A stretch of 64,000 bases of DNA from Basidiobolus meristosporus CBS 931.73 (lineage: Eukaryota; Fungi; Basidiobolomycota): positions 1 to 64,000 of the forward strand of contig MCFE01000280.1 of assembly GCA_002104905.1 (NCBI GenBank), given 5' to 3'. The notes beneath the pieces are model-generated. The model worked only from the letters and a program-made list of their open reading frames with translations. It ran no database searches and was not told the DNA's origin. Below, piece after piece: positions 4,954 through 26,971 of the stretch. The first letter of the stretch is position 1. Every line of letters starts with the position of its first letter. The translations under genes were made by a program, and so were the position numbers.

Positions 4954-6042
4954 TACCAGTTGACGCTGTCCTGACCAGCACTACAGTGTATTTGAATATC
5001 ACTTTCACTGCCGAGTCTAAATATCCAGCTTCGGTGACACCAACCGCAAAACGAATAGTTACGCTGATATTATTATCGGTTAGAAGCCACTACTGCTCCA
5101 TATCTTCTCTGAACAATTGAACTTCATGCGCTCTAGGCGCGAATAAAGATAGGACACCCTATCGTGTAACTGTGCCTTTAGTCTTATCAGTCATCATAAT
5201 TAAAATTGCTATTTTGCACTAGGAGTAGCGAAAGAACTCATTAGTAATTCATGTACTGAAATCATTTCCTGTCGAAATTTGTGTAGAAAGTATTTACCGC
5301 TTTGAACGACATCATACCACAAACCCATGTTGTAAAAAATCGTGTCACAAGTAGTAACGATTAGGCAGGATTCTAGTTTTTGATTACACTATAGCCGAAA
5401 ATAGAGGGATTTCCATCATAGGTATTTCTTGGCGTTGCCTATATCTGGGCGATTGTGAAGGAAAAGAAAATACTGTTAATTCAAGAATATTGAGCTATTT
5501 AATCTGGTGATTTCATAACAACTGGAACTGCCTTGTGTTTGGTATATTTGTTGAGGCCACGATGGGCATATCAACTAATGGAGGTACGGTGGCGGTTTTT
5601 GTTGGGTTCAGGCTTCTAAGAAAGAATTGGATGTTCTCGATTTTCGGAGATTTTGTGGCTGTGTCTCCCAACAAGGATAAAATAATCATCAGTGTGATCA
5701 GTGATCGCAGAGCACGCGAGATCACAGATCCATTAAACCATTGATCCATCCATGCAAAATACTACAATAGCCGAAGTATTAATATAGTAATACCAATGCG
5801 CATATTCAGCCGCTCGCACTACGTCATAGGGATTTAAGAGCTGTGTGATACAGCAAGCATTGACGCTGGACTAACTTTGCGATCTAGAGCATGGAAATTT
5901 TTAATACCAACATATAATGTCATTTTATACGCCTCACTTGTCAAGAACATCCAAATAACATCCTCAACGCTATTTTTGTTACTTGAACAATATTCCACCG
6001 CAGTTAAATTTACGTAAACTACACTAATACTTTACTTATTGT

Positions 6043-6800
6043 TTAAGGCCAATTACAGATGATTGAGTGTTGTGATGGCTTACAAACAGTACCAGGGGCA
6101 CAATTCTGTGCATGGAGTCTGCCGTTAGAACAGACAGTAAATTCACCGGTTTTTCCTGGGCTAACGCATTGATAGGCTCCATTCCTGCAAGGACTTTCGG
6201 TAGGTCTAGATGAAAATCCATGGGTAACTGTTACCGTAGCGATATAGGTCATTGCCACAATTGTTGAGGCATATTCTGTAGGTTTATAGTAGTCGCATCC
6301 AGTTTCTACTGCCGTAGCTTGTTGGGTTTTGAAGACTTGTAAGTCTCAGTACAGTCTAAAACTTTGCTAATGGTCGTTTTGAGAAACTCTGTAGGTCCAT
6401 ATGTTTGGCCAAGGCCCCCACAAGGGGTAATTGTAGACGGTTGCATCTCCCGGGTATCAATAGATCTCTTAGTATCAACAGTGCTGTGAGATGAAGAAGG
6501 CTTGGAGTCATAGAGCTATCCGTATAGCTTAGTGTATCGGTGACTTTAGGGATATATGTAGTTGCTTCGTCTATCCAAGGTTCAGTCGTAGTAACAGATC
6601 TCTTAGTATCCAATCTACTATTCGCTGTATTGCCGTAAATCCTGATCGCGGTCAAATTCATTATTTGACTCTCTTTCTTTATTGCAATATACTATGGTGC
6701 TTGCTGTGTATTTACTACTTCATGGAACCAACGAAAACTCAGGAACATACTTATTTCCCGCAGTGCTAACGCGCTCGTCCCACTGGCTATCTTCATTCAT
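6043..6800 (-). pseudogene. Third, more decayed paralog of the Cys-domain/Thr-rich/CBM19 family
   Basis: Near 6690-6780 the minus strand reads VSTAGNKYVPEFSLVP*SSKYTASTIVYCNK, a homolog of the Cys domain. 6043-6190 reads CRNGAYQCVSPGKTGEFTVCSNGRLHAQNCAPGTVCKPSQHSIICNWP, a complete CBM19-like module. Confidence 0.75.
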
Positions 6801-8137
6801 TGCTTGAATACGATATTTACGGGCTAAACTTCGAAAGCTTGTTTGATTCTACACTCTCAATTAGCAAAAGATATCGCAATGTTGCAACCGAATGGTGTTG
6901 AATGAATTCTACAAATTTCTGATGTAGTCGTTAGTGGTACAAGCATTCTGGAACCCAAAACGCGCGGATATGTATGTGTAACCGAAACCCGGCTATGTAT
7001 AGATAAGGAATCTAATCTGTTTGACTCGGCTGATTTTGGGGAATTTACCTCAAATAACCAAATATTGGATCAACACACCTTATAGATTCGGAGGCACTTG
7101 CAACCGGGTTGAAAAACCCTCATCCATTCTTTCTTGATTGCCATAACTGTATTCACACTATACTTATGAGACAACTAGTTGAACTGGCTTGGATCACTTG
7201 GAATTCGTCTCTAGAACGTGGCAATGTTCAGCCAGTCAATAAATCGGTGTTCCAGAATGCTTTAATATTAAACTGGGTATCCCGGAAATCACACCCCAGT
7301 TGATGCTGTGAGCCGGCGAGTATCGCAAAGGAACATCTCCTCATCTTTAGGAGAAGAAGGATTCAAAATACCAGCATTCAAGCAGCTAAATTATATGTTA
7401 ACATCCTGTACAATACAGGCTCTATCAACCAATTTTGAATTCACAAGCCACTGATTGTTGAACACTCGCCAGATTCTGGAATTTCCTCGGAGTTTATCCC
7501 CTTCCGCACAATTTCATAACTCGATACAGAACTAGATGAATTTACCAATATTGTCCCGCCACCCTGAGTACATATTCACATGTTGGATACATTTATTTTG
7601 TGTCGAGTAACGTGCTTAACTTGAAATTTGGAGATAATTCCAGGACTTGGGCTACAATATACGTGACACCTACTACTCCATGTACATTTGTTTATTAGTT
7701 TGAGATCCATCGGGCAATCCTTGATACATCCACAATAGAAAGCAATTGATATAGTTCCGAAATCCTGAACCCGAGCCCAGGTCCGCCAACACATAACTCT
7801 GCGGTTGATTTTCTGTAGTTCTATCACGAAAACGTGCTATCTGTCTCTGATGGTCCTTATTACCCGGCGAAATTGCAGTTCTCGTGCCAACTGGATAAGC
7901 GATACCTGATTGGCTAATCACGTTTGCACGCAACAATAGAATGTGTGTCTAGAGTTTTCAAATAGCGCAATTTATTATCATGGAGATACATACAATACGA
8001 TGATAAAAACCGTGATATCAGGTCCTATTAGCAAAAATAAGAACAGTGGATTCAAGTGTGCAAGAGGAAATTAGCCACCAATACAGTATAATTTTGGCAT
8101 AAGTTTATCATACTTCGATATTAATTTCTCATTCAAA

Positions 8138-8196
8138 ATCTGATAAGTACTGATTTCGTAGAATCAGATAAGACAGCAATGAGTAGGATCTGATAA
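8138..8196 (+). promoter_or_regulatory. Three ATCWGATAA boxes (SreA/Fep1/Urbs1-type iron-responsive GATA elements) upstream of COMT-like gene 1
   Basis: ATCTGATAA at 8138, ATCAGATAA at 8163, ATCTGATAA at 8188: an exact 25-bp period, about 290-350 bp upstream of the ATG. Confidence 0.7.
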
Positions 8197-8484
8197 AACC
8201 ATTACTGTAATTGGATGGAATGTATGACACATCTAGCTTCATTACTATTAGCCAAATTTTACTATTCCACAAGCTGCCTTCGATATATATTCTAAACTGC
8301 ATATTATGTAAAGAATACAACGCCAAGTCATTACTTCAACCAAGCACTATAGTGATTGTGTGTGTGAGCATCTTGGTAATCCGCAGTTGATTAGAAACTT
8401 GGCTGGAGTCATTCCGTAGCTTACTGGCCGCCTATATATATACCTAGACAAATAGATACTGCATAGCCAGACTACAAGAGAGTA

Positions 8485-9156
8485 ATGACTCCAACCATCT
8501 ACAAACCAGATACTAAAGGATACCTGGACTTTGTCTTGTCCAACTCCACCCCTGGTGATGCCAAGTCTGTTCTCGCCGCAATGGACCGCTATGCCGAAAC
8601 AAACGCTTTGATGCATATTGGTGACAAGAAAGGAGAGTATATAGACGGCTTGATTGGCAAAAACAATGTTAAAATTATGGTGGAGCTCGGTGGATACCTT
8701 GGGTACAGCGCCCTTCGATTCTCCAATCTCCTCCCTGCCAATGGACACTACTACTCCTTCGAGATGAATCCCGAGTTTGCCAGTGTTGCGCAAAAGGTGA
8801 TTGATCATGCTGGACTCTCATCCAAGGTCACAATCATTGTTGGTGAGTTTAAGGTTACCAGTAATGATTTCCAAAGGGTCTGTGGTGTTGAGAAGGTGGA
8901 CATGGTGTTCATTGACCATTGGATGGAGCTATATGTCCAGGATCTCAAGATCATTGAGGCGGCCCAATGGCTCCGACCTGGGTCAACTATCGTTGCTGAC
9001 AACATCCTTATTCCAGATGCTCCAGAGTACGAAGCTTACATTGAAAACGCATCTGCCAAATACTCATCACAGCTGGTTGAGATCGAATTGACTCATCCAT
9101 CAAGACCCACGGAAACACTTGTGGATGGGATATTGATTGCAGAGGTGAAGGTTTAA
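8485..9156 (+). CDS. Catechol O-methyltransferase-like (Mg2+/SAM-dependent class I OMT), intact copy 1
   Basis: 223-aa intronless ORF with LMHIGDKKG, VELGGYLGYSA (SAM motif I), FEMNPE, VFIDHW and VADNI (metal ligands D, D, N). Confidence 0.9.
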   Translation: MTPTIYKPDTKGYLDFVLSNSTPGDAKSVLAAMDRYAETNALMHIGDKKGEYIDGLIGKNNVKIMVELGGYLGYSALRFSNLLPANGHYYSFEMNPEFASVAQKVIDHAGLSSKVTIIVGEFKVTSNDFQRVCGVEKVDMVFIDHWMELYVQDLKIIEAAQWLRPGSTIVADNILIPDAPEYEAYIENASAKYSSQLVEIELTHPSRPTETLVDGILIAEVKV

Positions 9157-9252
9157 CCAAGTTCATATGTATAATTCATCAATAAATACTTGTTTATCTG
9201 GACCTCGTTGAAGAGACTAACCATCAATGAGCCTACGAAGTATTTTTCCATC

Positions 9253-9261
9253 ATCAGATAA
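9253..9261 (+). promoter_or_regulatory. Single ATCAGATAA box between COMT-like genes 1 and 2
   Basis: Exact match to the same consensus. It is isolated, so it may be chance. Confidence 0.3.
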
Positions 9262-10118
9262 TACTACATGAGTGTACAAAAACATTTACATTTACTAACC
9301 TAAACGGAAATTCCATCACAGTGAATAGATGAAACGTGCATATATGAATTTCACTGAATGAAGATGGGAGGCATCGATAGCCAATCATGGGTGGCAATAA
9401 ACATGTGGATTGCACTCAATAATCATCATTAGGCATCAGTCCCAGGAAACTATTCTTTCAGTGCTACCAAAACAATCAGATATCATGATCTTTGTTTTAC
9501 ATTCGACTCCAACCTATAGAATATGCATATGATTACACTAACCCTATGCCTCTCTTGGTTGAACGATCCAGGATAAATTGTAAGCGAATGTTCTAGAATC
9601 AACCCATTGTTCCCTCAAAAATTACCTGTCATGCTGGTTAGCGTGTATTCTTATCTCTTTTGCTGTAAAGTATACGTATGCTTAGGTTGTTCGTGTAATA
9701 TGCTCATGCGAACCCACACATCTCAAATGTTGGTTATAGAGGTAACCCTGCCCACATCTCTACGCTGAGCGGCAGCCATCAGAATAATCATATAGCCAGT
9801 TTGGTGGGCAAGGCTAGTATCTACATTGAGCAACGAGATCAGCCCCACGCCTACTATTCTCATCACGAAAGTAAGGATGATCTAATATAACAATGGGATG
9901 CAATAGATCAAACTAAAGAACTTTGGATCTGACAATATAATAGAGATGTCGGTAGTCGTCAGTGCATAATCAATAAGTAAATAGCATCAGTCGGAAAATG
10001 GAAGATGTGCCAATTGCAGGGTAGCCCCTCTTTTTTCTCTGAATATGTCAAGGTATTATGGTTTACTCAGAATACACCAAGCGCCCTTGATATTGTAGAC
10101 GCTGATTTTTCATTCAGG

Positions 10119-10152
10119 ATCTGATAAGCAATTATGAAGGAGGATCTGATAA
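10119..10152 (+). promoter_or_regulatory. Two ATCTGATAA boxes upstream of COMT-like gene 2
   Basis: Matches at 10119 and 10144, again 25 bp apart, in a promoter that is otherwise clearly diverged from the gene 1 promoter. Confidence 0.7.
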
Positions 10153-10404
10153 GATCATTACTATAAATGGGCGAAATGTCTAACAATGAACAGGTTGATC
10201 ATTAAACACTGCTTTCCCACATGCTCGCTTCAGCACATATTCTCAAGAGTATACTCCAACTGAGTGTTATAGCGACCACAAATTTCTTGGCAATCCGCAA
10301 TCGAATATAGTCTCAATTCTAGACATTCCGTAGTTTACTGCTTGTATATATAGGGGTTCGCACCTAGGTTTATGGATACTATATAGCCAGATAACAAGAG
10401 AAAA

Positions 10405-11076
10405 ATGACTGCTACCATCTACAAGCCAGATACTAAAGGATACCTGGACTTTGTCCTGTCCAACTCCACCCCTGGTGATGCCGAGTCTGTTCTCGCCGCA
10501 ATGGACCGCTATGCCGAAACAAACGCTCTGATGCATATTGGTGACAAGAAGGGAGAGTACATGGATGACTTGATTCGCAAGCACAACACTAACGTTATGG
10601 TGGAGCTCGGCGGATATCTTGGGTACAGCGCCCTCTGATTCTCCAATCTCCTCCCAGCCAATGGACACTACTACTCCTTCGAGATGAATCCCGAGTTTGC
10701 CAGTGTTGCGCAAAAGGTGATTGATCATGCCGGACTCTCATCCAAGGTCACCATCATCGTTGGCGAGTTCAAGGTTAGTAGTAATGAGTTCTTGAGCACC
10801 TACGGCGTCAAGAAGGTGGACCTTGTGTTCATTGACCATTGGATGGAGGTGTATGTTCAGGATCTCAAGATCATTGAGGAGGCTCAATGGCTCCGACCTG
10901 GGTCAATTGTTGTTGCTGACAACGTTCTATTCCCTGGTGCTCCGGAGTACCAAGCATATATTGAAAAAAATTCAGCCAAGTTCTCATCGCGTCTGATCAA
11001 GATTCAGACGCCACATCCAATGAAGCCGAAGGAGACTATTTTGGACGGCCTGTTGGTTGCTGAATTAAAAGTGTAA
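10405..11076 (+). pseudogene. COMT-like copy 2 with one nonsense mutation
   Basis: Co-linear with copy 1. The CGA (Arg) of GYSALR is TGA at 10636-10638, and the same frame then continues to the normal stop at 11076. Confidence 0.85.
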
Positions 11077-12339
11077 ATTCCCCAAAACCCCTCAGTAGCC
11101 CTCTCACTTGAGAAATAAACGTGTTAAAACGAGATCTTCAGCGAATGCTGGCGTTTTCCGATGCATGCCATCAAAGCTTCCTTTCAAGCTGGAGCAACGG
11201 GTTTTTGAGTATGCAGGAGATTGTGTGAATGTACTTGTGATATATTGCTGCAATAATGATAATTAAAAGAGATTGAATGCAAACATCAACAGTTATATCA
11301 TTGCTAGGGGATAGTAGAAGTTGCCCAAGTGAGTTTTGATTTACCTAGTCTCAACGTTAGTGCTTTGTGAGCTTCTTAAGTTCCAATAACGTCAAGTGGA
11401 AACTGCGGATTGCGGAATACAGACCGCCAAAAAATGCATACAGTTGAGCTGGTGCATTTGATGAATCAATCAATGGTATCCATACTATAATTGTTCAATC
11501 AGCATTACCAAAACTTAGACTCAAGAGAGGCGAAATTTATCCCCGCAATACTGCAGTTTAGGATATTGATTGAAACTTCCATCATTCTTGGGTACGCTTT
11601 GTGGCTGGCCTTATGGCTGCCACAATGATATGAAAGGTGCACTTCTCTAGCATTTTTGCCTATGCCTTTGAACCAATCGACGATCTACTCTTGAAATATT
11701 TATTTGCAAATACATAAGATTTGCCCCAATGTTGAAGACTACTAGCATTGTACATTCCACAAGAATTTGGGAATCTTACTCAATGAGTTGCAGCATTATG
11801 CTCAGCATGAAAGTTGCTCATGAATTGATACTTGAATCATCTTTGGATATGAATAAAACTCGAAGTAAAATTACAATCAACTTGATAAAAATTCCATGAG
11901 CATGTGGTCTTTTGGATAACCGAGAAATATCATATCCTGGGTAGCTGTCTCTTGATGAAAGTAATTAAAGTAAATGCCGACAGAGAATTGTGCCAGGAAA
12001 TAATAAGGCTCTTAGATCAAGTCAATGTGAATATGAGATATATCACATTTTGATCCAGTAGCTTGCAATTGCTTTTATGCATGCTCTCAATCATGAGTAG
12101 ACCCTTAATATTAGTATATATTAGTATACTAAAAATCACAATTGTAAATCGATCGAAATATCTGAATGAAAGGCATCAAGCCAACACTACATATATTCGG
12201 TATGACTAATACATCAAGACTTGAAAGAAAGTAGTGAGAAATATACTTACTACAGCTTACCTCTTTTTGTACCCAGCCTTGCTTACGTCAAACACCGTCG
12301 AAAAATAAATAGCGAATGGTGACAATAACATTTTCACAT

Positions 12340-12754
12340 GCAGCAAACAACTTATCAAAGGTCAATAGAGGGGTGCAGTACAGTAACATTCAGCATTCAA
12401 TGTATGCTATTGAAGGAGAAAGAGAGGTCCAGCAAATGGTTAGTAAAGCACTGGCTATAGAAAGACTTCCCAGACATCATGATGAATATGCCATTTCCGT
12501 GATTGGCTTTGGTGATTTCGTGGTTCTGGTATTTCGATTCAGTATTATTTAGGCATTACGGCACCCTCCAAATCATTGGTCGGAAAATCATGATGGTATA
12601 CCTGAACAGACACCTCGTAGTGACTTGAGCTACCACCATAGCTGTACCCGAAATCCCCGGTGGGAAAGGTGGATACAATAGACCGTTGATATACAAGCTT
12701 ACAAGTGTAGTAAAAGTAAGGACCATTTATTTCTGTAGAGATATTGTCGACCAT
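12340..12754 (-). pseudogene. SABATH methyltransferase relic
   Basis: STFPTGDFGYSYGG and VQVYHHDFPTNDL motifs. DNA at 12430-12530 matches the intact gene (ccagaaccacgaaatcaccaaagccaat...gggaagtc.ttctatagccagtgcttt). Internal deletions and frameshifts. Confidence 0.8.
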
Positions 12755-13068
12755 TGACTAGAATAATGTGTGTACGGTAAAGAGAAATTCAAAAGAAGGG
12801 AAGTAAGAATATATAAAGATGCTCGACCACCAAGTACTATTAGTGGATTTCATTTTCTCGACTATCCCGAACAAAAACCATCGATAAATGCTTATCCAAG
12901 CACATTAACAACTAACAAATTCTTTGTTGGATAGAAAACTACTCCCGAAAGGGCATCTAGCAATCAAGAACAAGCCACGAACTGAATCTAATGAAGAATG
13001 TTTAATACTATACTACAAGAATTAGGGTATTCAGGGAAAGCAACTAGAAGTAGAACTGGGATAGCAGA

Positions 13069-14917
13069 TCATTTGGTCTTCGGGATCTTGGTGTACTTCA
13101 CGCCCAAGGAAAATAGGAATGCCGCCCCAGCAATGAAAATGGAGATTGTGAAAATGGTTCGAAGAGCATGGACATATACATTCACCACCAATGCTCGATC
13201 ACTCGGTGACAAGGAGTCCAAGAATTGGAGCCCTTTCGTGACGTCCTTTACAGGTATGTTGAGGTTCAGCTCTGCCAACCCTGCGGCCAGTCTGTTGTCA
13301 AAAATGGCACCAAACATGGAAATCCCAATCACTCCTCCGATCGATCGGCAAAAATTGGTTATGGAAGTGACTATGCTGACATCTTTACGCTCAACGGCAG
13401 CCTGACCAGTTAATACTAGAGCCTGAGGACAGCCTCCAGCCCCAGCCCCCAGAACAATCATAAAGCCAATCTGGTGGGCACGACTAGTATTTATATTGAA
13501 TGTCGAGACCAGTCCCGCCCCTACTGTCATCACCGCAGAGCCTATCCAGCACCAGATGATGATAATGCCAGTCCTCGAGATCAACTGACCAGCAGTAATA
13601 CTTATCAAGGAGACCGAAAGCACCATGGGCAGCATGTGAAGCCCAGACGAGATAGCCGATTCACTGAGAACAATCTGATAATACAACGGGATGTAATAAA
13701 TCAACCCGAAGAACATCATTCCGTAAAAAAACATTGCGATGAATGAAAACAGCGGTGAGCGCATCCCGAACAATCGGCAGGGAATGATTGGTTCGGCCGC
13801 CACCTTATACTCCACCACTACAAATGCTATCAAGAGCACACCCGACACACAGAATAGCGCGATGATGATGGGGGAGTTCCAGGCGTACTCATTCCCTCCC
13901 CATTGGGTGGGTAGCAGGAGCGTGATGATAAATCCAAGCAGCAACACAGTGCCGATGAAATCAATACGCTTGATCTTCTCCCAAAGTGAACTTTTTGTCG
14001 AAGGGAGGTGAAGAAACAGCACTACAATGACGATGGCGATCACCCCGATCGGGAGATTGATGTAGAAGGCCCATCTATGTAGCAATGTTACTTATTGTCC
14101 GCATTGTATAGTTTACAAATGAACACGTACCTCCAGGAAGCTTCGTCTGTAAAAACACCTCCTAAAAGCGGACCAAGCACTGCAGAAAGTGCCACCTGGA
14201 AAGAAATGTAAGAATCAGAGACCATCATTGTGCCCATAGCCTTCTGCAACACTTACCGTTCCGCTAATGAAACCTTGATACTTGCCACGTTCTCTGATTG
14301 GAATGATCTTGCTCATGATAATGTAGATCATGCCCTGGACTATAGAAAGGTTAGTGCTGGAAATGAAAGGCAGAAGAGGGCGTCGTACCACACTTGAAAA
14401 TGCTTACTTCCTCCTCCACCGATACCACCGATTGCTCTAGCAACGATCAGCATGATCATGTTCTGGGAGGCTCCTGATAACGCACTACCAATCTCAAATA
14501 TGATGATGGCGACTAAAAAAGTGGCTTTGCATCCGAAAATATCGGAAAACTAAGTGGGATTAGAGAATGGACTAGTTCAACACATCACTGAAATGGACAA
14601 ACCTTGCCGTAGAGTGGCTGACAAGCAGTGGCGGTCAGCATATAGGCTGTAGCCACCCACGTGATCTGATCGAATGCATCAAAATCAGTGGCGATCCTGG
14701 GTAAGGCGGTGGATACAATAGTTCGATCGAGCACGGCGAGCAACACAGCCAATGCAAGACCCAGGATGATCAGGAGAAGTTGTGAGAGGGTTCGCTTTTC
14801 TGGGTTGTGGGAATCATCAACCAGAGCTGGTTTAGAGGGGGTCTTTTCTAGATCCTCCAGTTTCATGCATTCACTGGAAGGGTCAGTAGGGGTAGTGACT
14901 GGTTCGTTTTTTGGCAT
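13069..14917 (-). CDS. MFS drug:H+ antiporter, DHA2/EmrB-QacA (14-TMS) type, copy 1; exons 14917-14603, 14549-14408, 14339-14257, 14195-14131, 14074-13069
   Basis: Four GT-AG introns spliced manually give an open frame with LDRTIVSTALPRI, WVATAYMLT, LYGKFSDIFG, VLGPLLGGVFT, WRWAFYINLPIG and LPTQWGGNEYAW. Confidence 0.9.
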
Positions 14918-15013
14918 CACAGACGGGAACGTTAGGGAAGCACCAGCCCAGCCCTCGTTTATATACACTACTGTTGCGGACCGTACGGGGATTCCTTCAT
15001 GAATTTCTCCGTG

Positions 15014-15043
15014 GGACGTTCTATCTAGATTATCTAGTCCTAT
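15014..15043 (-). promoter_or_regulatory. 30-bp element with two GATA cores upstream of MFS copy 1
   Basis: ggacgttctatctagattatctagtcctat is identical to 22930-22959. The minus strand contains AGATAA and AGATAG. Confidence 0.5.
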
Positions 15044-16346
15044 GAAAGTATCCCGAAATTCGGGGTTAACCAAAACAGTAACCATCCAAAACTCCCATCC
15101 CGATCATTTCATCAAGTGCTTACCAGGTTTCAAAGTAATCTACTCCCAAAAAAGGCTAACTACAGTCCAACCGATCCGCACTCTACTCTCTCGTCCAACT
15201 TGACCCAACTCGAATCTAATAAGCGGCTGGTCTGCTGCGACGAAAAAACCATCAATTCCGCTATTCGCATAGGGTTACCCATCGGCATACAAGCATACCT
15301 TCCGAGCCTCCCACCTATTAGGAAATGAGACGATTGAATATAGGTTCCGTAGAGCGTATCTTTCCTAAATCTATTCCCCAGCATCGCTCTTTATTCGAGT
15401 TTGCCTTGACCTTCCGATGAGTGAAAGCGTAGGTGTGTTGGGCTCAATCCACAATAAGCAATATCCAGGTATAGACGGAAGTAGACGGGAATAGACGGGA
15501 ATAAACGGAATGTAAGTGGTGGAAAAAATTCCTTCCTGTAGAACTAGTAAGTAAAAATTTCTCATCTTTACCTGATTAGGATTGTTATCATCAACCTTCA
15601 ATCTCGACTCGGAAAACCCAGATCGCCAGTCGTAATCGAAACCAAGCCAATCTAGGTACCCCTCTATCAGACGATATCCCGTAAACTTAAGGTTTAATTT
15701 GAGTTTCCTTGATTAAATTCCCAGATTGGTAGGCATTTGCATATGATGCATTACAGTAATCACTTGAAGGCGTAAATAACGGATGTTAATGAGCAACCCT
15801 AGAAATATTGAAAATATCCTAAAGCGACGCATTCTGTGAAATTCAATGATATTTACGAACGAACACTCTGTTGCAGACTGTAGTGGTAGACTTGGAATAC
15901 ACGGAAGATTCTGTGTAGTTCAATACCGAATTTATGACGGTTGCGAGCTATTGAATGCAAGCATGACGCTTTCTGGATGAGTTCACATGTTAGGCTATTG
16001 CTAACAGGCTGAGTGTTTGAGTCTTTATAGTGAATTCTGATATATCTGGCCTTTGCATTGGTAACTTCCAGACCAGTAGAAAGCAGTAAGATATTCCTCA
16101 AAATTCACACCAACACTGGAGCTTCAAAGACACCCCACTTCACACAATTCTGTCCACTATGTTATTACCATCGTCAGGGCGTCACCAAGTCTATACAAAG
16201 TGCGATCCCGTGACAAACTCCCAAAAGCAATCATGCAGCATTATTGGATTAAGAGGGAAACACTAGGTAGGCCTCTTGGTTGTTTGCCTCCTCCATGCGG
16301 TTGAAGTGTACAAGGATTTATTGATGAATTCTGCAAATAGACTCAG

Positions 16347-16973
16347 CTAAACCTTCACCTCTGCGATCAATAACCCATCTACTACTGTCTCACTGGGTTT
16401 CAAAGAATGGGCCATCTCGACCTCAACAGGTTGTGATGAGTATCTGGCGGATGAATTTTCAATGTAAGCTTTGTACTCTGGAGCACCAGGGAGAATGATG
16501 TTGTCAGCAACAACAGTTGACCCAGATCGGAGCCATTGAGCCTCCTCAATGATCTTGAGATCCTGAGCATACGCCTCCATCCAATGGTCAATGAACACAA
16601 GGACCACCTTCTTGACGCCGTAGGTGCTCAAGAACTCATTACTACTAACCTTGAACTCGCCAACAATGATGGTGACCTTGAATGAGAGTCCAGCATGATC
16701 AATCACCTTTTGCGCAACACTGGCAAACTCGGGATTCATCTCGAAGGAGTAGTAGTGTTCATTGGCTGGGAGCAGATTGGAGAATCGGAGGGCGCTGTAC
16801 CCAAGATATCCGCCGAGCTCCACCATAACGTTAGTGTTGTGCTTGCGGATCAAGTCATCCATGTACTCCCCTTTCTTGTCACTAATATGCATCAGAGCGT
16901 CACCAGGGGTGGAGTTGGACAGGACGAAGTCCAGGCATCCTTTAGTATCTGACTTGTAAATGGTTGCGATCAT
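16347..16973 (-). pseudogene. COMT-like copy 3, inverted; open frame with a 15-codon deletion, probably non-functional
   Basis: 208-aa ORF. PGDAKSVLAAMDRYAETNALMHIG is collapsed to PGDALMHIS, and there is a D-to-V change in KKVVLVFIDHW. I found no ATCWGATAA box upstream. Confidence 0.7.
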
Positions 16974-17896
16974 TACTCCTTTTCTTCTGGGAAAATGTAC
17001 ACCTGAATATCTTCAGGTGGGAGCTGCGGATTGCGGAATACAGGTCGCCAAGGAATTCACACAAAATTGAGCGCATGGGATATTTGCCATTTGGATATAT
17101 ATTGTGTCGCATTGAAATAAGTAATGGAACGCTCAACATAATGAAGATTTTCAGGGCTAGTCATCGGTGTCCAACAAATATCATTAAGCTGAACCCATCA
17201 CATGAATAGTGTATCTCGAGTCATTTAACAAACATCCTTATATTTGATCCAGAAAACTGGCTGACAAGAATTACTGATTTGATAGAATCATCATTGCTAA
17301 GCCACCCAAGAGAGGTCAGATTAGACCGTGTAGCGATCCGATTTGTCGGTTATCATCTATATTATAGCTGCTCCACAATTTAGTAATGGTATTTACTAAA
17401 ATGCTTACGTGCTCAGGCTGTTGTTTTATATGCTACTACAATTCACAATGCTGTGGGGAGTACCACACACAAATCTATTCTAACAGGGCTACTAGAATAT
17501 TCTTTACATATTTATGATAGCACTCTAGAGCTAGTATCCTCAATGTCATTATATCCTTTTCAAATTTAAACATCTAGATGTACAACACACAACTGCAGAA
17601 ATGGTTACAGTCATTTAGTTTGGCTCCCAATTCACATATTATAGTTTCATAATATATTGGGAGCGTAGCTAAAAAATGCTTGTGGTAATATGTGGATGTC
17701 GTTAATATCCTTGTGGTTGGTTAGAGATATCTGAGCGCAAGGTGTTGAGCCAACAATGCAGATATCAAGTTCCACCGCCACCCCAAGATGCGCTAACCCC
17801 AATTGATCAACAAAATGTGGTGAGCAATACGTTTACTACTACTGTCCTATTTCTATCCGCAGTTTACTTACATCTGATATTGAAATGTGACAGGAC

Positions 17897-18968
17897 TTAG
17901 TCAGCAACTTTCTCGATAGCTACATAACGAATGGTAGCGGCTACATTTTCACTTGCAGTATACAATGTCGAAAGCTTCGAGAAAAACTCATCCAAGAATT
18001 TTGTTAGTTTAGCTTCATCATCAAATACGGCTCCCTTGACTAGTCCGGTATAGAGCTGAGGCCAGAAAATTGCTTTGAGATGATCGCTATTACGGCCCCT
18101 GACGTTTTCGAACATGTTATCTATGTAGTGAATTAACTCTAAGGATGGAACCTCATGAATTGCTTGAACGACATTCTCCTTGGTCCGAGCGATTAGTGGT
18201 ATGAGCGTGTAGCCCAACAATGAAGGATCGATGTTGTACTCGTTTATATGTTGTTGCCATATATCATCAATACCGCCAAGATTTCCGAAATCACCTAGTA
18301 GCGAGATTACTAACTTTCCTCCTTTACGTAGCTCCTTGGCACGGCAACTTAAAAACGTCACGAATTGCTTTTGAGCCACGTCCTGAATCAGCGACAGTTG
18401 CTCCTCGCTGACATGCTTGGAGTAAACCATCAACGGTCGGTAGAGGGTTACACCAATATCCGGCATCCAATGTATGCTGTTGAAGGAGAAGGAGAGGTCC
18501 AGTAAAGCGTTGGGAAAGCACTGGCTATAGAAGGATTTCCCAGACATCATGCTGAATATGCGATTTCCGGGATTGGCTTTGGTGATTTCGTGGTTCTGGT
18601 ATGTCAATTCGGGATCATTCAGGCATTTGAACACTTCCCGAAAATCATTGATCGGAAGGTCATTGTGATACACCTGGATGGACAGTGGTCCATCATTCCT
18701 CCTTGTTTCTTGCATGGCATCTAGGATGGCATTGATCGATATCATTGAGTTACCGCCATGGCTGCACCCAAAATCCCCAATGGAAAAGGTGGATGTGATA
18801 TTGGGAGCAAGGTGCTGCACTACGATATTGGAAGAGCATTAGTGACGGCTTCTGGGATACTCTACAAAGAGATATAGTGTTACCTATCTTGCGAAGAATT
18901 ACAATCCCATCCTCGTTGATATGAGCCTGCATTGTTGAATTCTCGTTGTAATCCATCATCGGCTGCAT
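17897..18968 (-). CDS. SABATH-family SAM-dependent carboxyl methyltransferase; exons 18968-18884 and 18819-17897 (~335 aa)
   Basis: 64-nt GTAAC...CTAAT...TAG intron. Motifs DYNENSTMQ, IGDFGCSHGGNS, QVYHNDLPINDF, MSGKSFYSQCFP, SFNSIHW and FLSCRAKELRKGG. Confidence 0.9.
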
Positions 18969-20439
18969 GATCGAGTTACTCGACGTTTCTAGAGATGTGC
19001 ATCAGTGCATCGACTAGTAGCGTGACTGTGACGCTGAAATTTACCTGCCAGTTGGTGGGGTTGATTGACCTGTGCGGATTGAATGATCTTCTTCATGGCT
19101 AGCGAGCTTGATGTGAATTTCAATTACTAGCCAGTATTTATAGACGCTCGAACGCCTCCAGACACATGCTGTGGATTTGATTGATGTGAACTTGCACATC
19201 TCACCAAATGATCTACAAACTACTGCAAGCAATAGGAGATGAGTAAGGGCGAAAGATGTGACTTGAACCAATCGGCAAGGGTCCCGAAAAGCGCATTCAT
19301 CACTGTTGTTCCTATGAGTGGTGCGAGCACCCAGATTAACGGAGATTGACGGAAGATGTTGTCCGTTGATACGTATGACCAAAATTCGAGTGAGTGTGTG
19401 GTGAGAAAGATTTTTTTAACTGATCGCCATGTCATTTCCACTATGCTTGGTTCTCTCGAAAAAGTCGAATCAGCCTAGATAAAACTCTGGATCAAAGCTG
19501 AATCAGATACATCCTATATGTTCGTCTGACATACCCAAACCGTTTTTGCAGACATTTGTACCAAAGGGATAGCTAATACACTGGAAAGCCAACAATGACA
19601 AAACAACCACGTACATTATATTCAGAAAGGTCCCAAGAGTATGTGTGCAAATTTTGGGGGCTTTAGGACAGCTCACAATATTTCCGTGTTCTGGGTACCT
19701 GACTACATTTAACTATTTACATGAACTTAGTCATGAACACCATGTTGATATAAATATTTAGGTGTTTCCATAATTTGAAGTGACTGGTAGAATATCAGCT
19801 ATTGATTTCAAGTGAATTAGATATGGAGCGCATACTTGGGTACCATTTCTGAATTTGAAGAGGGGTATTTATTTGCACTCTATTAAGAACTTAAGAACGG
19901 ATGGTATATCAGGTATTTTACCTTTGCTCAGTCAGGCAATTCTTAGAAGCTTCATTTCCCCAGTCTCTGTCAATTACTTCTGAATTCCTAGTTTTGTATG
20001 CCTTAATATCAGCATTGCTCACAATATCCTCCATACATACATACTGGCTCACATTCAGTGCGACAGAATCATCAAAGCAACAAAATTGTCATTGAATGAT
20101 CTGCTCCATTATATGAACAACTAAGAGCTATGGGCATTTGTACTTTATTTTTGCTTTTCAAAGCATGGAATTTTTTGCTTGAGCAGTTCTCGATTGTTCA
20201 TGTATCAATGTTGCCGTTTTTATGATAAGAGTAGATCCTCAACATGATTATAGCCAAATGTTGATGTGCTAAAAATGGATGGATCTAAATATCTGAATGC
20301 AAGGTATCAACTCAACATGACATATATTAGGTAGGACTGACACACCAAGATGTGCTAACCCCAATTGCTTGCAACAAAGTGGTGAGTAGTACATTTACTA
20401 TAGCTCGCCTCTTTCCATCCGCAGTTTGCTTACATCCGA

Positions 20440-20530
20440 TATCGAAATTCAGGCACTTTTTCGAGAGATACATAGACCACGATGGCAACCACATTTTCAC
20501 TTGCAGCATAGCCAGTATTTATAGGCACTC
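20440..20530 (-). pseudogene. SABATH deletion scar: last codons fused to promoter
   Basis: acattttcacttgcag (3' end of the gene) is joined directly to tagccagtatttatag (TATA region of the gene). About 1.17 kb is missing relative to 17957-19128. Confidence 0.7.
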
Positions 20531-21024
20531 GAACACCTACAGACGCATGCTGTGGATTTGATTAATGCAAACCAGCACACCTCACCAAACGATCTACATA
20601 GTAATGCTCAGCGAAAGGAGATGAGTAAGGGCCAAAGATGCGATTTGAACCAATCAGGAGACATTCTTCACCCCTGTTTCCAAGAGTGGAGCGATTTCCC
20701 GGAGTAACCACGATTGACGGAAAATATAATTGTCCGTAGAAAAGAGTTGTGTGAGTGTATGGCAATTAAGAATCATTATTTTCTGCTCGCGAAAACGACG
20801 ACCTGGCGGGGGTAAAATCATTGATAAACGCCTATTCAAGTGCATCATACGTATTTGCAAATTCTTAGTTGGATAGAAAACTACCCCTGAAAGGCCGTCT
20901 AGCAATCATGGAAATGCTTGAAATTGAAGCTGATTAAGAATGTTTAATGGTATACTACAAGAATTAGGGTATTGGAGGGAAGCTATTAGTAGTAGGGTTA
21001 TGATGGTGGATGCGGTAAACATAA

Positions 21025-22854
21025 TCATTTGGTCTTCGGAATCTTGGTGTGCTTCACACCCAAGGAGAATAGAAATGTTGCGCCAGCAAAGAAAATGGTG
21101 ACCGTGAAAATGGTTTGAAGAACGTGAACGTATACATTTACCACCGATGCCCGCTCACTCGATGACAAGGAGTCCAAGAATTGGAGCCCTTTCGTGGCGT
21201 CCTTTACAGGTATGTTGAGGTTCAGCTTTGCCAAGCCTGCAGCTAGTCTGTTATCGAAAATGGCGCCAAACATAGATACCCCTAGTACTCCTCCGATCGA
21301 TCGAGAGAAGTTACTTAAGGAAGTGACTATGCTCACATCCTTACGCTCAACGGCAGCCTGGCCAGCCAAGATCAGAGTCTGAGGGCAGCCTCCAGCCCCA
21401 GCCCCCAAAATAAGTAAATAAACAATCTGTTGGGCACGACTAGTATCTACGTCGAACATCGTGATGAGCCCCACCCCTACCGTCATCACCGCAGAGCCTA
21501 TCCAGCACCAGACGATGACGATACCGGTCCATGAGGTCAACTGGCCAGCAGTAATACTAAGGATGGAGACTGAAAGCACCATGGGCAGCATTTGAAGCCC
21601 AGACGAGATAGCCGATTCCCCGAGGACAATCTGATAATACAACGGGATGTAATAGATCACCCCGAAGAACACCACTCCGTAAAAAAACATTGCGATGAAT
21701 GAAAACAGCGGTGAGCGCATCCCGAACAATCGGCAGGGAATGATTGGTTCGGCCGCCACCTTATACTCCACCACTACAAATGCTATCAAGAGCACACCCG
21801 ACACACAGAATAGCGCAATGATGATGGGGGAGTTCCAGGCGTACTCATTCCCTCCCCATTGGGTGGGTAGCAGGAGCGTGATGATAAATCCAAGCAGCAG
21901 CAGAGTCCCGATGAAATCAATTCGGTTAACCTTCTCCCAAAACGAACCATGTGTCGAAGGGAGATGAAGAAACAGCACTACAATGACGATGGCGATCACC
22001 CCGATCGGGAGATTGATGTAGAAGGCCCATCTATGTAGCAATATTACTTATTGTCCGCATTGTATAGTTTACAAATGAATACGTACCTCCATGTGGCTTC
22101 GTCTGTAAAGACTCCTCCCAAAAGGGGTCCAAGCACCGAAGAAAGCGCCACCTAAAAGAGTGTTAGAAACCACGGTCGTGTCGGAAGTCTGCCGTAGTAC
22201 TTACCGTCGCACTAATGAAGCTTTGATACTTGCCACGCTCTCGGATGGGAATGACCTTACTCATGATAATGTATACCATGCCCTGAACTGTAGATAGGTT
22301 AATGCTGGAAGTGTGGGGCGGGAGAGGGCGTCATACCAAGCTTGAAAATGCTTACTTCCTCCTCCGCCAACGCCACTGATTGCTCTAGCAATGATCAGCA
22401 TGATCATGGTCTGTGAGGCTCCTGATAACGCACTACCAATCTCAAATATGAGAATGGCCATCAAAAAAGTGACTTTGCATCCGAAGATATCAGACAACTA
22501 GGTGGAGGTTAGAGAATGGACTAGTTCAACACATCACTGAAATGGACAAACCTTGCCGTAGAGTGGCTGACAAGCAGTGGCGGTCAGCATATAGGCTGTA
22601 GCCACCCACGTGCTCTGATCGAATGCATTAAAATCAGTGGCGATCTTGGGTAAAGCTGTTGCTACGATGGTTCGATCGAGAGCAGCCAGTAGCATTGACA
22701 TCGCAAGGCCCATCATGATCAGGAGAAGTTGTGAGAGGGTACGTTTTTCTGGACTGAGGGGATCAGATGCAACGTGGTTTTTTTCTAGATCCCCTAGCTT
22801 CGCGCACTCAGAGGGTAGATCATTGTGCGTGGGAACTGGGTTGCTCTTTGGCAT
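21025..22854 (-). CDS. MFS drug:H+ antiporter, DHA2 type, copy 2; exons 22854-22552, 22497-22356, 22287-22205, 22151-22087, 22030-21025
   Basis: Same exon phases and internal exon lengths (142, 83, 65 nt) as copy 1; open frame after splicing. Confidence 0.9.
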
Positions 22855-22929
22855 TATGGAAAGGAACAATAACATAGCATCGGACGCAGCCCTTGCTTAT
22901 ATATGCTACTCATGATGAGCTACTGAATA

Positions 22930-22959
22930 GGACGTTCTATCTAGATTATCTAGTCCTAT
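22930..22959 (-). promoter_or_regulatory. 30-bp double-GATA element upstream of MFS copy 2
   Basis: Identical to 15014-15043 while the neighbouring sequence diverges. Confidence 0.5.
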
Positions 22960-23982
22960 AAAGGCATCCCGTCAAGTCTTATAAGAATCAATATGTTCTC
23001 ATCTGGATTATTTCATCAAGTGTTTACTAGGCTTCAAAGAGATCCACACCCGAAAAGGTTAATAACAGTCCAACCAAATCACATATAACTCTGGTATCTA
23101 ACATACTTGACCTCCCGCTGCCGAATCAATCCAAACCTCACCAAAGTATCTAACTCATGAATCCAAGCCAACTAAATCGAGAATTAAGCGATGGTCCTGA
23201 TTGCTCCACTGCGGTGAACAATGAAGCATTCGCCATTCATATGGGGTTACCATAACAATTATATATATATGTAAATCGAACGATGCCTATCGTTTCCATC
23301 GAACATATCTAACCCAATTCTATTCCCCAGCATAGCTCTTGATTCGAATTTACCTTGGACTTTGGATGCGAGCGAAGGTGTCGGTGTCTTGGCCCAATCC
23401 GTAATAAGCGATGTTCAGGAATAAATGGGATATAAGTGGTGGAAAAAATTTCCTTCCAGTGAGTAATGATTTCTTACAGCTGCCTGATTGGCTACCTGAT
23501 TGGAAAGAGTTTTCATCTGCCTCAACATGAACTCGGAAATCCCAGATCGTAAGCCGAATTTCGACACTAGACCGACAAGTAGACAACCCTCAATTAGACA
23601 AGATCCCGAAATGAAGTTTAATTTGGGTTTACATAAAGTCGATAATCAAGCAACCCCAAGTTAGCCATGATCGCGTGGAATTCCGGTTTAATTGGGCGTT
23701 TCTTGATTAAATTCTCTCGCTTGGCGGGTATTCGCGTATTATTACCTAGATTGGCTCATCGCGTAACATTAGGGGATACTTTCTGTTTGGGTGATTCTTT
23801 ATTAAGTATAGGATCCTACCATAGAATTGACTGATTGGCCACTTTTTGTTTACCAAATAACAGTTTGCTTGGGATACACCACGGGTAGGGGTGACATTTG
23901 GGATATTTATGACAACAACCTTGATATATAACAATAGCCGCTCGAAACTGGATGTCCGGTTACATCTATCCACCCATCGCCT

Positions 23983-24009
23983 TACTAACCTTGTTCGTGT
24001 TGCTTTTAG
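23983..24009 (+). other. Probable branch point (TACTAAC) and 3' splice site of an intron upstream of the kinesin ATG
   Basis: TACTAAC at 23983-23989, then a pyrimidine tract and TAG at 24007-24009. The donor site was not determined. Confidence 0.45.
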
Positions 24010-24103
24010 ATTCCCTTCCCTTTCTCTCCCCCCGATAGATTACCTGATCTCCCGATCAAACCAACCCTACCACCCGTTTTCCCCTCTTACTGCTTATTTA
24101 ACG

Positions 24104-26971
24104 ATGGAGATACAATCACTTCCTAGTATGACCCCAATGACACAGACCCCCGGGCTGATGAAAAAATTTCGCATCCAGAGCCCGGTTGGAAATGTGCGCA
24201 AGAGTCTATTCAAAGGCGTCGTTTCGCCTGGCGCCCCTACCGGTGGCAAAACACCCTACCTCAGCAGGCTCGAAAGAAAATTCAACAGCTACGATCCCGA
24301 CAGAGAGCCAGTGAAGACTTTCCTCCGTATACGACCAGGCCCGAACCGCAACCTGCTTTCCAGCCTACCAAATAACTATCTGGAGCTGATCAATGATACC
24401 GAGGTGTTGATGTCCCCGCCGGCCGATTCGAACGCTTACAAGGCTAGGTCGGGTATCCAAGAGAGATTCAAGTTCACCAAAGTGTTCAACGAGGAGACCA
24501 CACAAAACGACTTCTTCCTCGAGACCGCCCGTCCCCTTATCTCCCAAGTGATGAATGGTGAGAATGCATTGATATTTGCATACGGCGTATCCAATTCCGG
24601 TAAAACCTACACGATTCAAGGTTCCCGGGAGAACCCCGGTTTGCTGCCCAGAACTTTGGAGCTGATGCTAAACAGTATTCACGGCCACCAGAGCTCCGAT
24701 CTGCTCAAACCCACCAGATACTGTGAAGTGGAGGCTTACCGATCAAGTGATGACCTCAATTTGACCACCGACGAGCTAGCGGATGCTCATTCCAAGCTTG
24801 ATGAAGCGTTCGACAAGGTCGACTGTGATCCAGACTACGAGTACGCCGTTTGGGTATCGTATGCTGAGATTTACAACGAGAAGGTGTACGATCTTCTCGA
24901 CCCTGGAATGATCAATGACTCCAAACGGAACTTCCTCACTTTGAAGAAGGATCGCAAGACCGGGTACAAGTACATCGGGGGATTACGCGAGATGAAAGTG
25001 AACTCGGTGGAGGACGGTTACCGCATCCTCAGCCAAGGCCAAAACAATCGTACCGTTTTCTCCACTTTGCTCAACGCTGTGTCTAGTCGTAGTCACAGTA
25101 TATTTACCATCAAACTCATCAGGGTCCCCAAAGATGCCATGACGGTGGATTTAAAAGTAAAATACTCCACCGTGAGTCGCATTTCGTTAGTAGACTTGGC
25201 CGGTGCCGAACGTAGCAAGCTTACCCAGAATACCGGTGAGCGACTAAAGGAGGCCAACAACATCAATAAGTCACTTATGGTTCTGGGCCAATGCTTGGAG
25301 AGCCTGCGACACAATCAGACTCGCGAGCACAAGGAGGTTGTACCATTCCGTCAATCGAAATTAACCGAGATCTTCCAAAGTTCATTCGTCGGCGAAGCGA
25401 AAGCGGTGATGCTGGTGAATGTGAACCCCTACGAGACCAGTTTTGCCGAGACAAGCCACGTCCTCAAGTTCGCTGCCGTAGCCATGGATATCACAACCGT
25501 CAAGCGTACGGTGCAAAAAGTCAAGATACCCAAGTTCCACGAGATCGAGTCAGACTTGGACACTCCCACTAAACCCTCCAAGCGAGCCAGCTTTGATTCG
25601 GACTTCGTATCCGAAGAAGACGAAGGCGTTGAATCAGAGGAAGAGGATGTCTATGTCGCGGACATGGTCAGCAAGTATGAGCATGTGCTCTTCGAGATAC
25701 GCGACAAGTGGTTAGATGCCGAATCTCGATGCGCAAACATGGAAGCAGAAATCCGCGAGGAACTGACCAACGAGTTTGCCGAGAGAATGAAGAGCTTGGA
25801 GGCTATGTATATCTCTCGTTTGACCAGTGAAAATGAGATGAACGAATTCAAGACCGAGAAGAAAATTGACATCTTGAGTCGCAATCAAACGCACATGGAA
25901 TTGATGGCTGCTGAGAACGATCTTGATTACGATGAGAAGGTGCTTAGACTCTGCCATGAAGTGGACGAACAAAAGGCCATCATCAACCTTCAAGAGAACA
26001 CCATTCGAGAGCTTGAGTTTGACCTCGCCACCTCCCACGGACTGGTTGCCGCCGAGAAGTCACAGAAGATGTCCTTGTACGACAAACTTCAGGAACTGGA
26101 AGACTCGGTTCCTGCCGAAGTCGAACAAGCTGTCCAAGAAGCGCTGGCAAAACAGGCTGAAGAACACGCAGCAAAGTATGCCCAACTCCAAGCATCGTTT
26201 GATACTCTCAAAGCGGAGTACGCCGAGCTGGAGAAACATCTCAAAGAGACCGCCAGTGAGAACCAGGAGATGAAGAAAGAATTCACCAAGGACAAAGCAT
26301 ATCTGGAACACAAGAACACCCAACTCCTTGAAATCGCCTCCATGTACCAAAAAGAAGGATCTATGGAGGAAGAGCGCCCTCAACAAACCACACCAACCAA
26401 GCCTAAGCCAAATGCCTATATGCATGCTACTCCTGACTCCCAAGCCAAGACATCAACCCCCAGCTCCACTGCGCAACCCAAGGATGTTGTCAAATCCGGG
26501 TTTTTGAAGAAATACCTCTGGGGCAAGAAGAAGCTAGCCTACGACTCGTACGAGGCAGTGTCCGTTGATCCGGCGACTGACTACACCACCGTAGTCAAGG
26601 GGCCAGTCATGAAGTCCCCCACTGGGGGTGTCCAGGTCGTTTTCACCGATATCGAGACCTATAATGGGGATGAGCCAGAATCGTCCACCACCCCGGCTGT
26701 GCAAGCGCTGCGGGCCCAGGAGAAGCCCTCGCTCAGTCCATTCATTCATAAGGCACGTGGTCTATTCCGCAAAACACCCTCGAAAGCCTCCGGTAGCCAG
26801 GATGACATTTTCGGGGACGATCAGCCAAAAAAGAAGACCAGAAAGCTTAGAAACAAGAAGATCTTCACGGAGCAGGAGATCAACAACAACATCCAGTCCA
26901 TTGAAGAGGACAGCCGGACCCCGATGAAGTCCAGACTGCGCCAACGGAATGCGATCAAGTTCGACTACTAA
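24104..26971 (+). CDS. Kinesin-6 (KIF23/MKLP1-like) motor protein, 955 aa from ATG 24104
   Basis: P-loop AYGVSNSGKTYT, kinesin-6 loop-6 insertion, switch I NAVSSRSHSIF, switch II LVDLAGAER, VPFRQSKLT, coiled coil, and tail motif KGPVMKSPTGGVQVVFTDIETY. Confidence 0.92.
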   Translation: MEIQSLPSMTPMTQTPGLMKKFRIQSPVGNVRKSLFKGVVSPGAPTGGKTPYLSRLERKFNSYDPDREPVKTFLRIRPGPNRNLLSSLPNNYLELINDTEVLMSPPADSNAYKARSGIQERFKFTKVFNEETTQNDFFLETARPLISQVMNGENALIFAYGVSNSGKTYTIQGSRENPGLLPRTLELMLNSIHGHQSSDLLKPTRYCEVEAYRSSDDLNLTTDELADAHSKLDEAFDKVDCDPDYEYAVWVSYAEIYNEKVYDLLDPGMINDSKRNFLTLKKDRKTGYKYIGGLREMKVNSVEDGYRILSQGQNNRTVFSTLLNAVSSRSHSIFTIKLIRVPKDAMTVDLKVKYSTVSRISLVDLAGAERSKLTQNTGERLKEANNINKSLMVLGQCLESLRHNQTREHKEVVPFRQSKLTEIFQSSFVGEAKAVMLVNVNPYETSFAETSHVLKFAAVAMDITTVKRTVQKVKIPKFHEIESDLDTPTKPSKRASFDSDFVSEEDEGVESEEEDVYVADMVSKYEHVLFEIRDKWLDAESRCANMEAEIREELTNEFAERMKSLEAMYISRLTSENEMNEFKTEKKIDILSRNQTHMELMAAENDLDYDEKVLRLCHEVDEQKAIINLQENTIRELEFDLATSHGLVAAEKSQKMSLYDKLQELEDSVPAEVEQAVQEALAKQAEEHAAKYAQLQASFDTLKAEYAELEKHLKETASENQEMKKEFTKDKAYLEHKNTQLLEIASMYQKEGSMEEERPQQTTPTKPKPNAYMHATPDSQAKTSTPSSTAQPKDVVKSGFLKKYLWGKKKLAYDSYEAVSVDPATDYTTVVKGPVMKSPTGGVQVVFTDIETYNGDEPESSTTPAVQALRAQEKPSLSPFIHKARGLFRKTPSKASGSQDDIFGDDQPKKKTRKLRNKKIFTEQEINNNIQSIEEDSRTPMKSRLRQRNAIKFDY

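Follow-up and report, generated by a model that had tools for sequence, protein, structure and literature searches.

The first 64,000 nucleotides of contig MCFE01000280.1 from Basidiobolus meristosporus CBS 931.73 (positions 1-64000, referred to here as the window, with the contig start at window position 1) contain an array of small-molecule methyltransferase and efflux pump genes; the species is a gut fungus. Three families are present: COMT-fold O-methyltransferases, SABATH carboxyl methyltransferases, and DHA2-type transporters of the major facilitator superfamily (MFS). Each family has three copies within ~15 kb, and five of the nine copies are broken or altered (Table 1). Families were assigned by Pfam on open reading frames (ORFs), and the copies were mapped by repeat finding, self-blastn, and tblastn, for which COMT1, the MFS proteins and the SABATH protein of the public annotation served as queries. 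Spliced proteins are the public models P0001 and P0050, the MFS search used the last exon, and the in-frame stop of COMT2 was read through as X in comparisons.

Table 1. Genes, relics and promoter words of the array, with formin-linked COMT paralogs at other loci
Feature	Position	Strand	State or context
Three ATCWGATAA words	8138..8196	+	spaced exactly 25 bp, 290-350 bp upstream of COMT1
COMT1	8485-9156	+	intact, single exon, 223 aa
DHA2 MFS relic	9726-9854	-	fragment, ~ residues 396-453 of B. ranarum ortholog, ~40% identity (tblastn)
Two ATCTGATAA words	10119..10152	+	25-bp spacing, before COMT2; in alignment with two COMT1 boxes
COMT2	10405-11076	+	in-frame TGA at 10636-10638
SABATH relic A	12148-12682	-	pieces ~ residues 59-181 and 3′ end/flank of intact gene; internal deletions
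MFS-A	13069-14920	-	intact, about five exons
COMT3	16347-16973	-	208-aa ORF, 15-residue in-frame deletion
SABATH	17897-19096	-	intact, 359 aa, three exons (two introns)
SABATH relic B	20276-20740	-	nearly whole coding sequence deleted
MFS-B	21025-22857	-	intact
COMT paralog and formin, L004	1824-2492 and 10535-12492
COMT paralog and formin, L006	10001-10504 and 12712-16890

A preliminary description of this DNA had listed three COMT-like, three SABATH and two MFS genes, interleaved by repeated local duplication. Pfam bears out the families and their placement, and repeat finding, tblastn and self-blastn agree both on the local duplication and on a SABATH set of one intact gene and two relics. 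The count falls short by a third MFS copy, the relic between COMT1 and COMT2, and of the three COMT-like genes, all of which are present, only COMT1 is fully intact. The SABATH gene had been placed at 17897-18968 and is longer in the public JGI model, which includes two introns. The claim that these families are the only recognisable genes holds for positions 1-23000. The enzyme classes proposed were also correct, in that COMT1 is a full-length homolog of human COMT, the SABATH protein carries the expected Gln and Trp, and the pumps score best on the DHA2 model TIGR00711.

The relics could be traced to their intact counterparts. In self-blastn, positions 9773-9854 of the MFS relic align with 21399-21480. 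SABATH relic B joins the 5′ flank directly to the terminal ~60 nt of the coding sequence and the 3′ flank, as seen in the alignments of 17714-17962 with 20276-20510 and of 19128-19369 with 20509-20740. A dispersed repeat of ~100 bp lies between the intact SABATH gene and relic B (19601-19701), and matches at 75-80% identity are found twice on another B. meristosporus contig (L006 830-928 and 5166-5264) and in B. ranarum (L008 192-250). This repeat may be a small mobile element.

Methyltransferases and efflux pumps of the array

ORFs at 8485-9156 (3.5e-18), 10684-11076 and 16347-16973 match PF01596 (Methyltransf_3) in Pfam, where COMT1 scores 66.1 bits against a cut-off of 22. COMT1 aligns over its full length with human and rat soluble COMT (S-COMT) in phmmer (E ~1e-41; 32-34% identity to human) and with the S. 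pombe Cmt1 structure (PDB 5zy5; E 7e-38). The AlphaFold model of COMT1 has a predicted local distance difference test (pLDDT) score of 94.3 and superposes on PDB 1h1d, 3bwm and 1vid with template modelling (TM) scores of 0.90-0.94 and a root-mean-square deviation of ~2 Å. Judged by sequence and predicted fold, COMT1 is a homolog of the Mg-dependent class I COMT-fold O-methyltransferases.

In COMT, the Mg2+ ion is coordinated by Asp141, Asp169 and Asn170, and Lys144 removes the proton from the catechol hydroxyl (PMC3466255). The metal ligands are kept in the window proteins, and the alignments show no change at D144 and almost none at D172 and N173. The lysine position is occupied by Met in all three window copies (Met147 in COMT1) and by Gln in B. 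ranarum P0006, and 36 of the 43 homologs encoded at other loci retain Lys. COMT1, COMT2 and COMT3 accordingly read HWME where their paralogs read HWKD. Because the defining catalytic lysine is missing, the window copies are best described as COMT-fold homologs and not as canonical COMTs, and whether they methylate catechols is uncertain. They resemble human and rat S-COMT and S. pombe Cmt1 and Cmt2 (EC 2.1.1.6) in full-length homology, fold, S-adenosylmethionine (SAM) motif and Mg2+ ligands, but differ in having Met for Lys144 and in the arrays of iron-GATA words in two of the three promoters. The COMT-like enzyme would act on a substrate whose hydroxyl, when coordinated by the metal, is sufficiently acidic to dispense with a base.

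The other two COMT copies are altered. COMT2 is 81% identical to COMT1, and its TGA replaces the CGA codon of Arg78, placing a stop inside the SAM-binding region. The public model of COMT2 avoids the stop by splicing out 28 residues, among them the SAM-binding motif GGYLGYSA. COMT2 is a probable recent pseudogene. In COMT3, the deletion takes away the helix formed by residues 26-39 in the COMT1 model.

In the COMT tree, all Basidiobolus proteins fall in one clade (98/99) and the window trio is monophyletic (98/97), beside the B. meristosporus paralogs P0009 and P0011 on other contigs. A COMT paralog is found upstream of a formin (FH2) gene, 2-8 kb apart, in both B. ranarum and B. meristosporus (Table 1). 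Since P0009 and B. ranarum P0007 both adjoin the formin, this locus looks ancestral and the window COMTs derived. Bacterial horizontal transfer of the COMT copies was considered and rejected, their kin being fungal and animal COMTs.

The SABATH gene was recognised from its ORF at 17897-18820 (minus strand, 307 aa), which is 100% identical to a protein of B. meristosporus CBS 931.73 and matches PF03492 (Methyltransf_7) at 2.1e-34, with 119.7 bits against a cut-off of 29.8. The protein aligns with caffeine-pathway N-methyltransferases, a mycobacterial fatty-acid O-methyltransferase and Clarkia SAMT at E-values of 1e-14 to 1e-17, and its matches in the PDB include 2efj, 5f2k and 1m6e. In SABATH enzymes, Gln25 and Trp151 (SAMT numbering) position the substrate carboxylate (PMC10193983). 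Gln38 of the window protein aligns with Gln31 of 5f2k, in the YxxxSxxQ motif that carries Gln25 in SAMT, and Trp170 aligns with Trp151 of 1m6e. Both residues are conserved across the Basidiobolus/Entomophthora clade. The Y-x-x-N-S-x-x-Q and H-W carboxylate-holding motifs are thus held in common with the plant enzyme (Clarkia SAMT, 1m6e) and with mycobacterial 5f2k. The window protein is otherwise only ~25-30% identical to these and belongs to a small clade from Basidiobolus, Entomophthora and Conidiobolus. The enzyme is predicted to esterify a small carboxylic acid with SAM.

An exhaustive search recovered nine proteins below E 1e-30. Of eight of these, one is from B. ranarum, two belong to Entomophthora muscae, two are plant gene models of excessive length and three derive from metagenome/Logan data, and the Conidiobolus coronatus relative falls just above the same threshold. 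At greater distance, the matches are to other plants, a brachiopod and a dictyostelid. As the nearest kin are from Basidiobolus, Entomophthora and Conidiobolus, vertical descent within Entomophthoromycotina is indicated. Horizontal transfer from bacteria is common for secondary-metabolism genes of Basidiobolus (PMC7466969). A recent bacterial transfer was rejected for this SABATH gene, whose closest kin are Entomophthoromycotina, ahead of plants, a brachiopod and a slime mould. We found no report in the open literature on fungal members of this entomophthoralean clade.

The pumps were recognised from ORFs at 13069-14085 and 21025-22041, which match MFS_1/TRI12 in Pfam. Their best NCBIfam model is TIGR00711 (DHA2), with scores of 225.3 and 220.5 bits that lie below the cut-off of 230.2. 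The 225-bit match spans model positions 5-441 of 485, and the next-best models are tetracycline and multidrug exporters. Homologs carry the names MDR, EmrB/QacA or DHA2. A crude hydropathy count gives 10-12 peaks at a strict threshold, where the DHA2 class has 14 membrane spanners. MFS-A and MFS-B each match the entire B. ranarum ortholog P0051 over about five exons, at 77% identity for P0051. The last exon of MFS-B is 85% identical to that of MFS-A, and the public model of MFS-B (486 aa) starts at an internal Met. The window pumps share their TIGR00711, TRI12 and MFS_1 matches with the DHA2 family (EmrB/QacA, TC 2.A.1.3), including toxin pumps of the TRI12/AflT type, but sit just under the curated TIGR00711 cut-off. 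Their family has expanded in Basidiobolus, and the B. meristosporus genome has at least eight of its paralogs. They are predicted to export small organic molecules. A role as siderophore transporters was also considered and is unsupported, the best models being drug and antibiotic exporters of the DHA2 type.

Duplication, promoters and linkage

The array grew by local duplication of segments. The unit at 12148-15706, which holds SABATH relic A, MFS-A and the upstream flank, is repeated at 20279-23630, and the core of this repeat (12874-15172 with 20814-23075) is 82% identical over 2.3 kb. The COMT copies are 78-86% identical to one another, and one of them is inverted. For all COMT and MFS pairs, synonymous divergence (dS) is 0.27-0.57 and the ratio of nonsynonymous to synonymous divergence (dN/dS) is 0.19-0.29, indicating that the copies are not recent and that purifying selection acted on them through most of their past. 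The low dN/dS speaks for the COMT-like enzyme, in spite of its missing lysine, still having some activity.

Duplication at this locus is not confined to the three families. To the right of the array, directly after a kinesin gene, lie a tandem pair of pyrroline-5-carboxylate reductase (P5CR) genes (27834-28733 and 29389-30312, plus strand; 93% amino acid identity, dS 0.32) and three NCS2 xanthine/uracil permease genes (31432-33183, plus; 35184-36926, minus; 39066-40538, plus). The permeases are 91-97% identical, with dS of 0.05-0.11 and dN/dS of ~0.5. The interval from 8 to 41 kb is thus a duplication hotspot in which five of six gene families are present in two or three copies. Since the unrelated P5CR and NCS2 neighbours were copied as well, the co-duplication of the array families reflects physical proximity and is no evidence of joint function. 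Further along, copia-type RVT_2 pieces in two adjacent ORFs (44619-46070, minus strand, GC 37-40%) mark a retrotransposon relic.

The promoters were searched for regulatory words. SreA, Fep1 and Urbs1, which repress genes in response to iron and are of the GATA type, have ATCWGATAA as their extended site (PMC2610380). The window holds eight of these words where 2.2 are expected, a count reached in none of 100 shuffles, and all occurrences lie within 8138-21637. Regularly spaced groups stand before COMT1 and COMT2 (Table 1), and of the remaining words one follows COMT1 and two fall inside the coding sequence of the MFS duplicates, at corresponding positions. The promoters of COMT3, SABATH and both MFS genes have no such word, even with one mismatch allowed outside the GATA core, and no 8- to 10-mers beyond chance are common to the promoters of the three families. 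The COMT-like subclade is apparently iron-regulated, to go by these putative sites. A search of the literature for a link between COMT and iron regulation returned nothing relevant. Siderophore activity is strong in B. meristosporus, whose siderophore NRPS (nonribosomal peptide synthetase) genes are expanded (PMC7466969).

We compared the locus with paralogous loci in both Basidiobolus genomes and with SABATH loci of more distant relatives, noting that the B. ranarum contigs compared are 2.7-27 kb long and make the synteny test a weak one. The SABATH paralogs of B. ranarum lie either beside two Methyltransf_23/25 methyltransferases or alone on a contig. In the first of these settings (L002 973-4742), the SABATH paralog has 50% identity and precedes a tandem pair of Methyltransf_23/25-type genes on the opposite strand. 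The COMT genes of B. ranarum are found beside a lipase, an MIT protein and the formin, beside an oxidoreductase, or alone, and the pump gene P0051 has an HSP70 gene at a distance of 5 kb and a contig end at ~300 bp. Neither tblastn nor blastn revealed hidden copies of the other families at these B. ranarum loci, and no COMT or MFS gene stands within 10 kb of the SABATH loci of E. muscae and C. coronatus. The contigs that carry COMT paralogs differ in length from those that carry MFS paralogs in both Basidiobolus genomes, except for the contig of the window itself. Conservation of the linkage in relatives, which the preliminary description had made a check on its proposal, was not observed, and this is in part the outcome that it had named as refuting: COMT, SABATH and MFS genes stand together at no other locus read, and as far as these short contigs reach, the three-family linkage is unique to the window locus.

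The preliminary description had also stated that no polyketide synthase (PKS), NRPS or terpene core gene accompanies the array. This is correct inside the window, but the contig edge is only ~7.9 kb to the left of the array, and a core gene may lie beyond it. No core biosynthetic enzyme is present in 1-24000. To the left of the array, one gene of 444 aa without a recognised family occupies 184-2956, and the ten ORFs in 1-7900 and at 15853-16101 have no Pfam match. The array resembles fungal secondary-metabolite clusters in placing tailoring-type methyltransferases next to MFS exporters. It differs from them in having no core enzyme in the readable DNA, no conserved synteny and no common promoter motif, and its size is due to segmental duplication.

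Public gene models of the array comprise three short PF01596 genes (8554-9045, plus; 10405-11076, plus; 16452-16895, minus), two MFS genes (13069-14866 and 21025-22716, both minus) and one PF03492 gene (17897-19096, minus). All three COMT models are shorter than their ORFs. The kinesin ORF at 23891-26971 (plus strand) is uninterrupted over 1026 aa, and its public model (24158-25915) has only 586 aa. With the kinesin and all three COMT models falling short of their ORFs, the deposited annotation under-calls genes in this region.

Function and origin of the array

On balance, we think it probable that the array is a young, lineage-specific feature of B. meristosporus made up of accessory genes for small-molecule handling. 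Local segmental duplication would have produced about three copies of an ancestral neighbourhood of one COMT-fold gene, one SABATH gene and one DHA2 proton-antiport pump. Redundant copies would then have decayed, until the COMT and SABATH families were each left with a single sound gene and the pumps with two. The COMT-like enzyme is proposed to O-methylate a metal-chelated hydroxyl on a substrate that does not depend on the lysine, probably under iron scarcity. Joint action of the three families on one substrate is possible, if doubtful.

Several considerations weigh against this interpretation. A SABATH gene is unlikely to have come to lie beside a COMT gene by chance, given that the genome yielded no more than about six COMT paralogs. 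None of the three families has lost its last sound copy. A SABATH paralog of B. ranarum also adjoins two other small-molecule methyltransferases, and the SABATH genes of the genus may tend toward pathway contexts. Finally, with contigs as short as those of B. ranarum, a conserved cluster in that species could have gone unseen.

The preliminary description had read the locus as a methylate-and-export module. The families and their adjacency stand, but double methylation of one substrate followed by export is unsupported beyond that adjacency. As a hypothesis it is reasonable, but it is weakened by four points: the three families stand together at no other locus read, nothing hints at shared control of the genes, duplication here did not discriminate between these families and their neighbours, and the COMT-like enzyme departs from the canonical type. 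In its fuller form, COMT1 and the SABATH enzyme would methylate the hydroxyl and the carboxyl of one class of phenolic acids, and the DHA2 pumps would export the neutral product, for detoxification or as a volatile. Dihydroxybenzoates, salicylate and catecholate siderophore fragments from gut bacteria are the candidate substrates. The adjacency and co-duplication of the three families are in keeping with such a pathway, as are the carboxylate-binding Gln38 and Trp170 of the SABATH enzyme and the Mg2+ ligands of the COMT copies, which bind vicinal oxygens. The iron-GATA arrays that precede COMT1 and COMT2 would agree with a connection to iron chelators, and the siderophore activity and expanded siderophore NRPS genes of B. 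meristosporus (PMC7466969) point in the same direction. However, the three families are linked at no relative or paralogous locus read, the iron words are missing from the SABATH, MFS and COMT3 promoters, no promoter motif is common to the families, the catalytic lysine is lost from every COMT copy, and unrelated neighbours were duplicated too. We regard this pathway as unlikely, and the specific proposal of a dihydroxybenzoate or salicylate substrate as considerably less likely still.

A more speculative version, which we hold to be improbable, combines these elements under iron control. Iron scarcity would induce the lysine-less COMT-like enzyme, which, with the SABATH enzyme acting as an “esterase-reverse” enzyme and with the DHA2 pumps, would cap catechol and carboxyl groups and expel catecholates. 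The substrates could be siderophore fragments of gut bacteria or the fungus’s own iron-mobilising phenolics. If true, this would be a backbone-less, iron-regulated “cap and export” pathway of a kind not known to have been described in fungi.

Alternatively, the array might be the tailoring and export end of a larger cluster, whose core (PKS, NRPS or other) would lie beyond the left contig end or elsewhere and whose product might be a methoxylated phenolic that mobilises iron. The contig does begin at position 1, with a single 444-aa gene of no known family before the array, and the iron words before COMT1 and COMT2 would suit such a product. However, there is nothing recognisable in 1-7900, the right side abuts housekeeping-type genes (kinesin, P5CR and NCS2 permeases), and no core gene was observed in the readable DNA; we give this explanation little credence. 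Least probable of all is that the array is mostly decaying duplicate DNA of little function, its open frames being copies not yet disabled: five of nine copies are broken or altered, the region is prone to duplication with retrotransposon relics further along, and the public models of all three COMT copies are truncated, but dN/dS of 0.19-0.29 at dS of 0.27-0.57 in all pairs implies long purifying selection, and COMT1, SABATH and both pumps have complete frames and conserved cofactor motifs.

The array is an example of how segmental duplication can mimic a gene cluster in the B. meristosporus genome. As it stands, its value is also in documenting an entomophthoralean SABATH clade not reported in the literature we found, and a lysine-less COMT subclade that is under purifying selection and has iron-repressor words in the promoters of COMT1 and COMT2. 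This apparently iron-regulated COMT subclade and the SABATH clade are the most testable new points. Should the three families act together, the locus would be a rare fungal metabolic cluster without a backbone enzyme. It would then offer a possible route by which the fungus neutralises or produces catecholic iron chelators, with a bearing on the competition for iron between fungus and bacteria in the amphibian gut.

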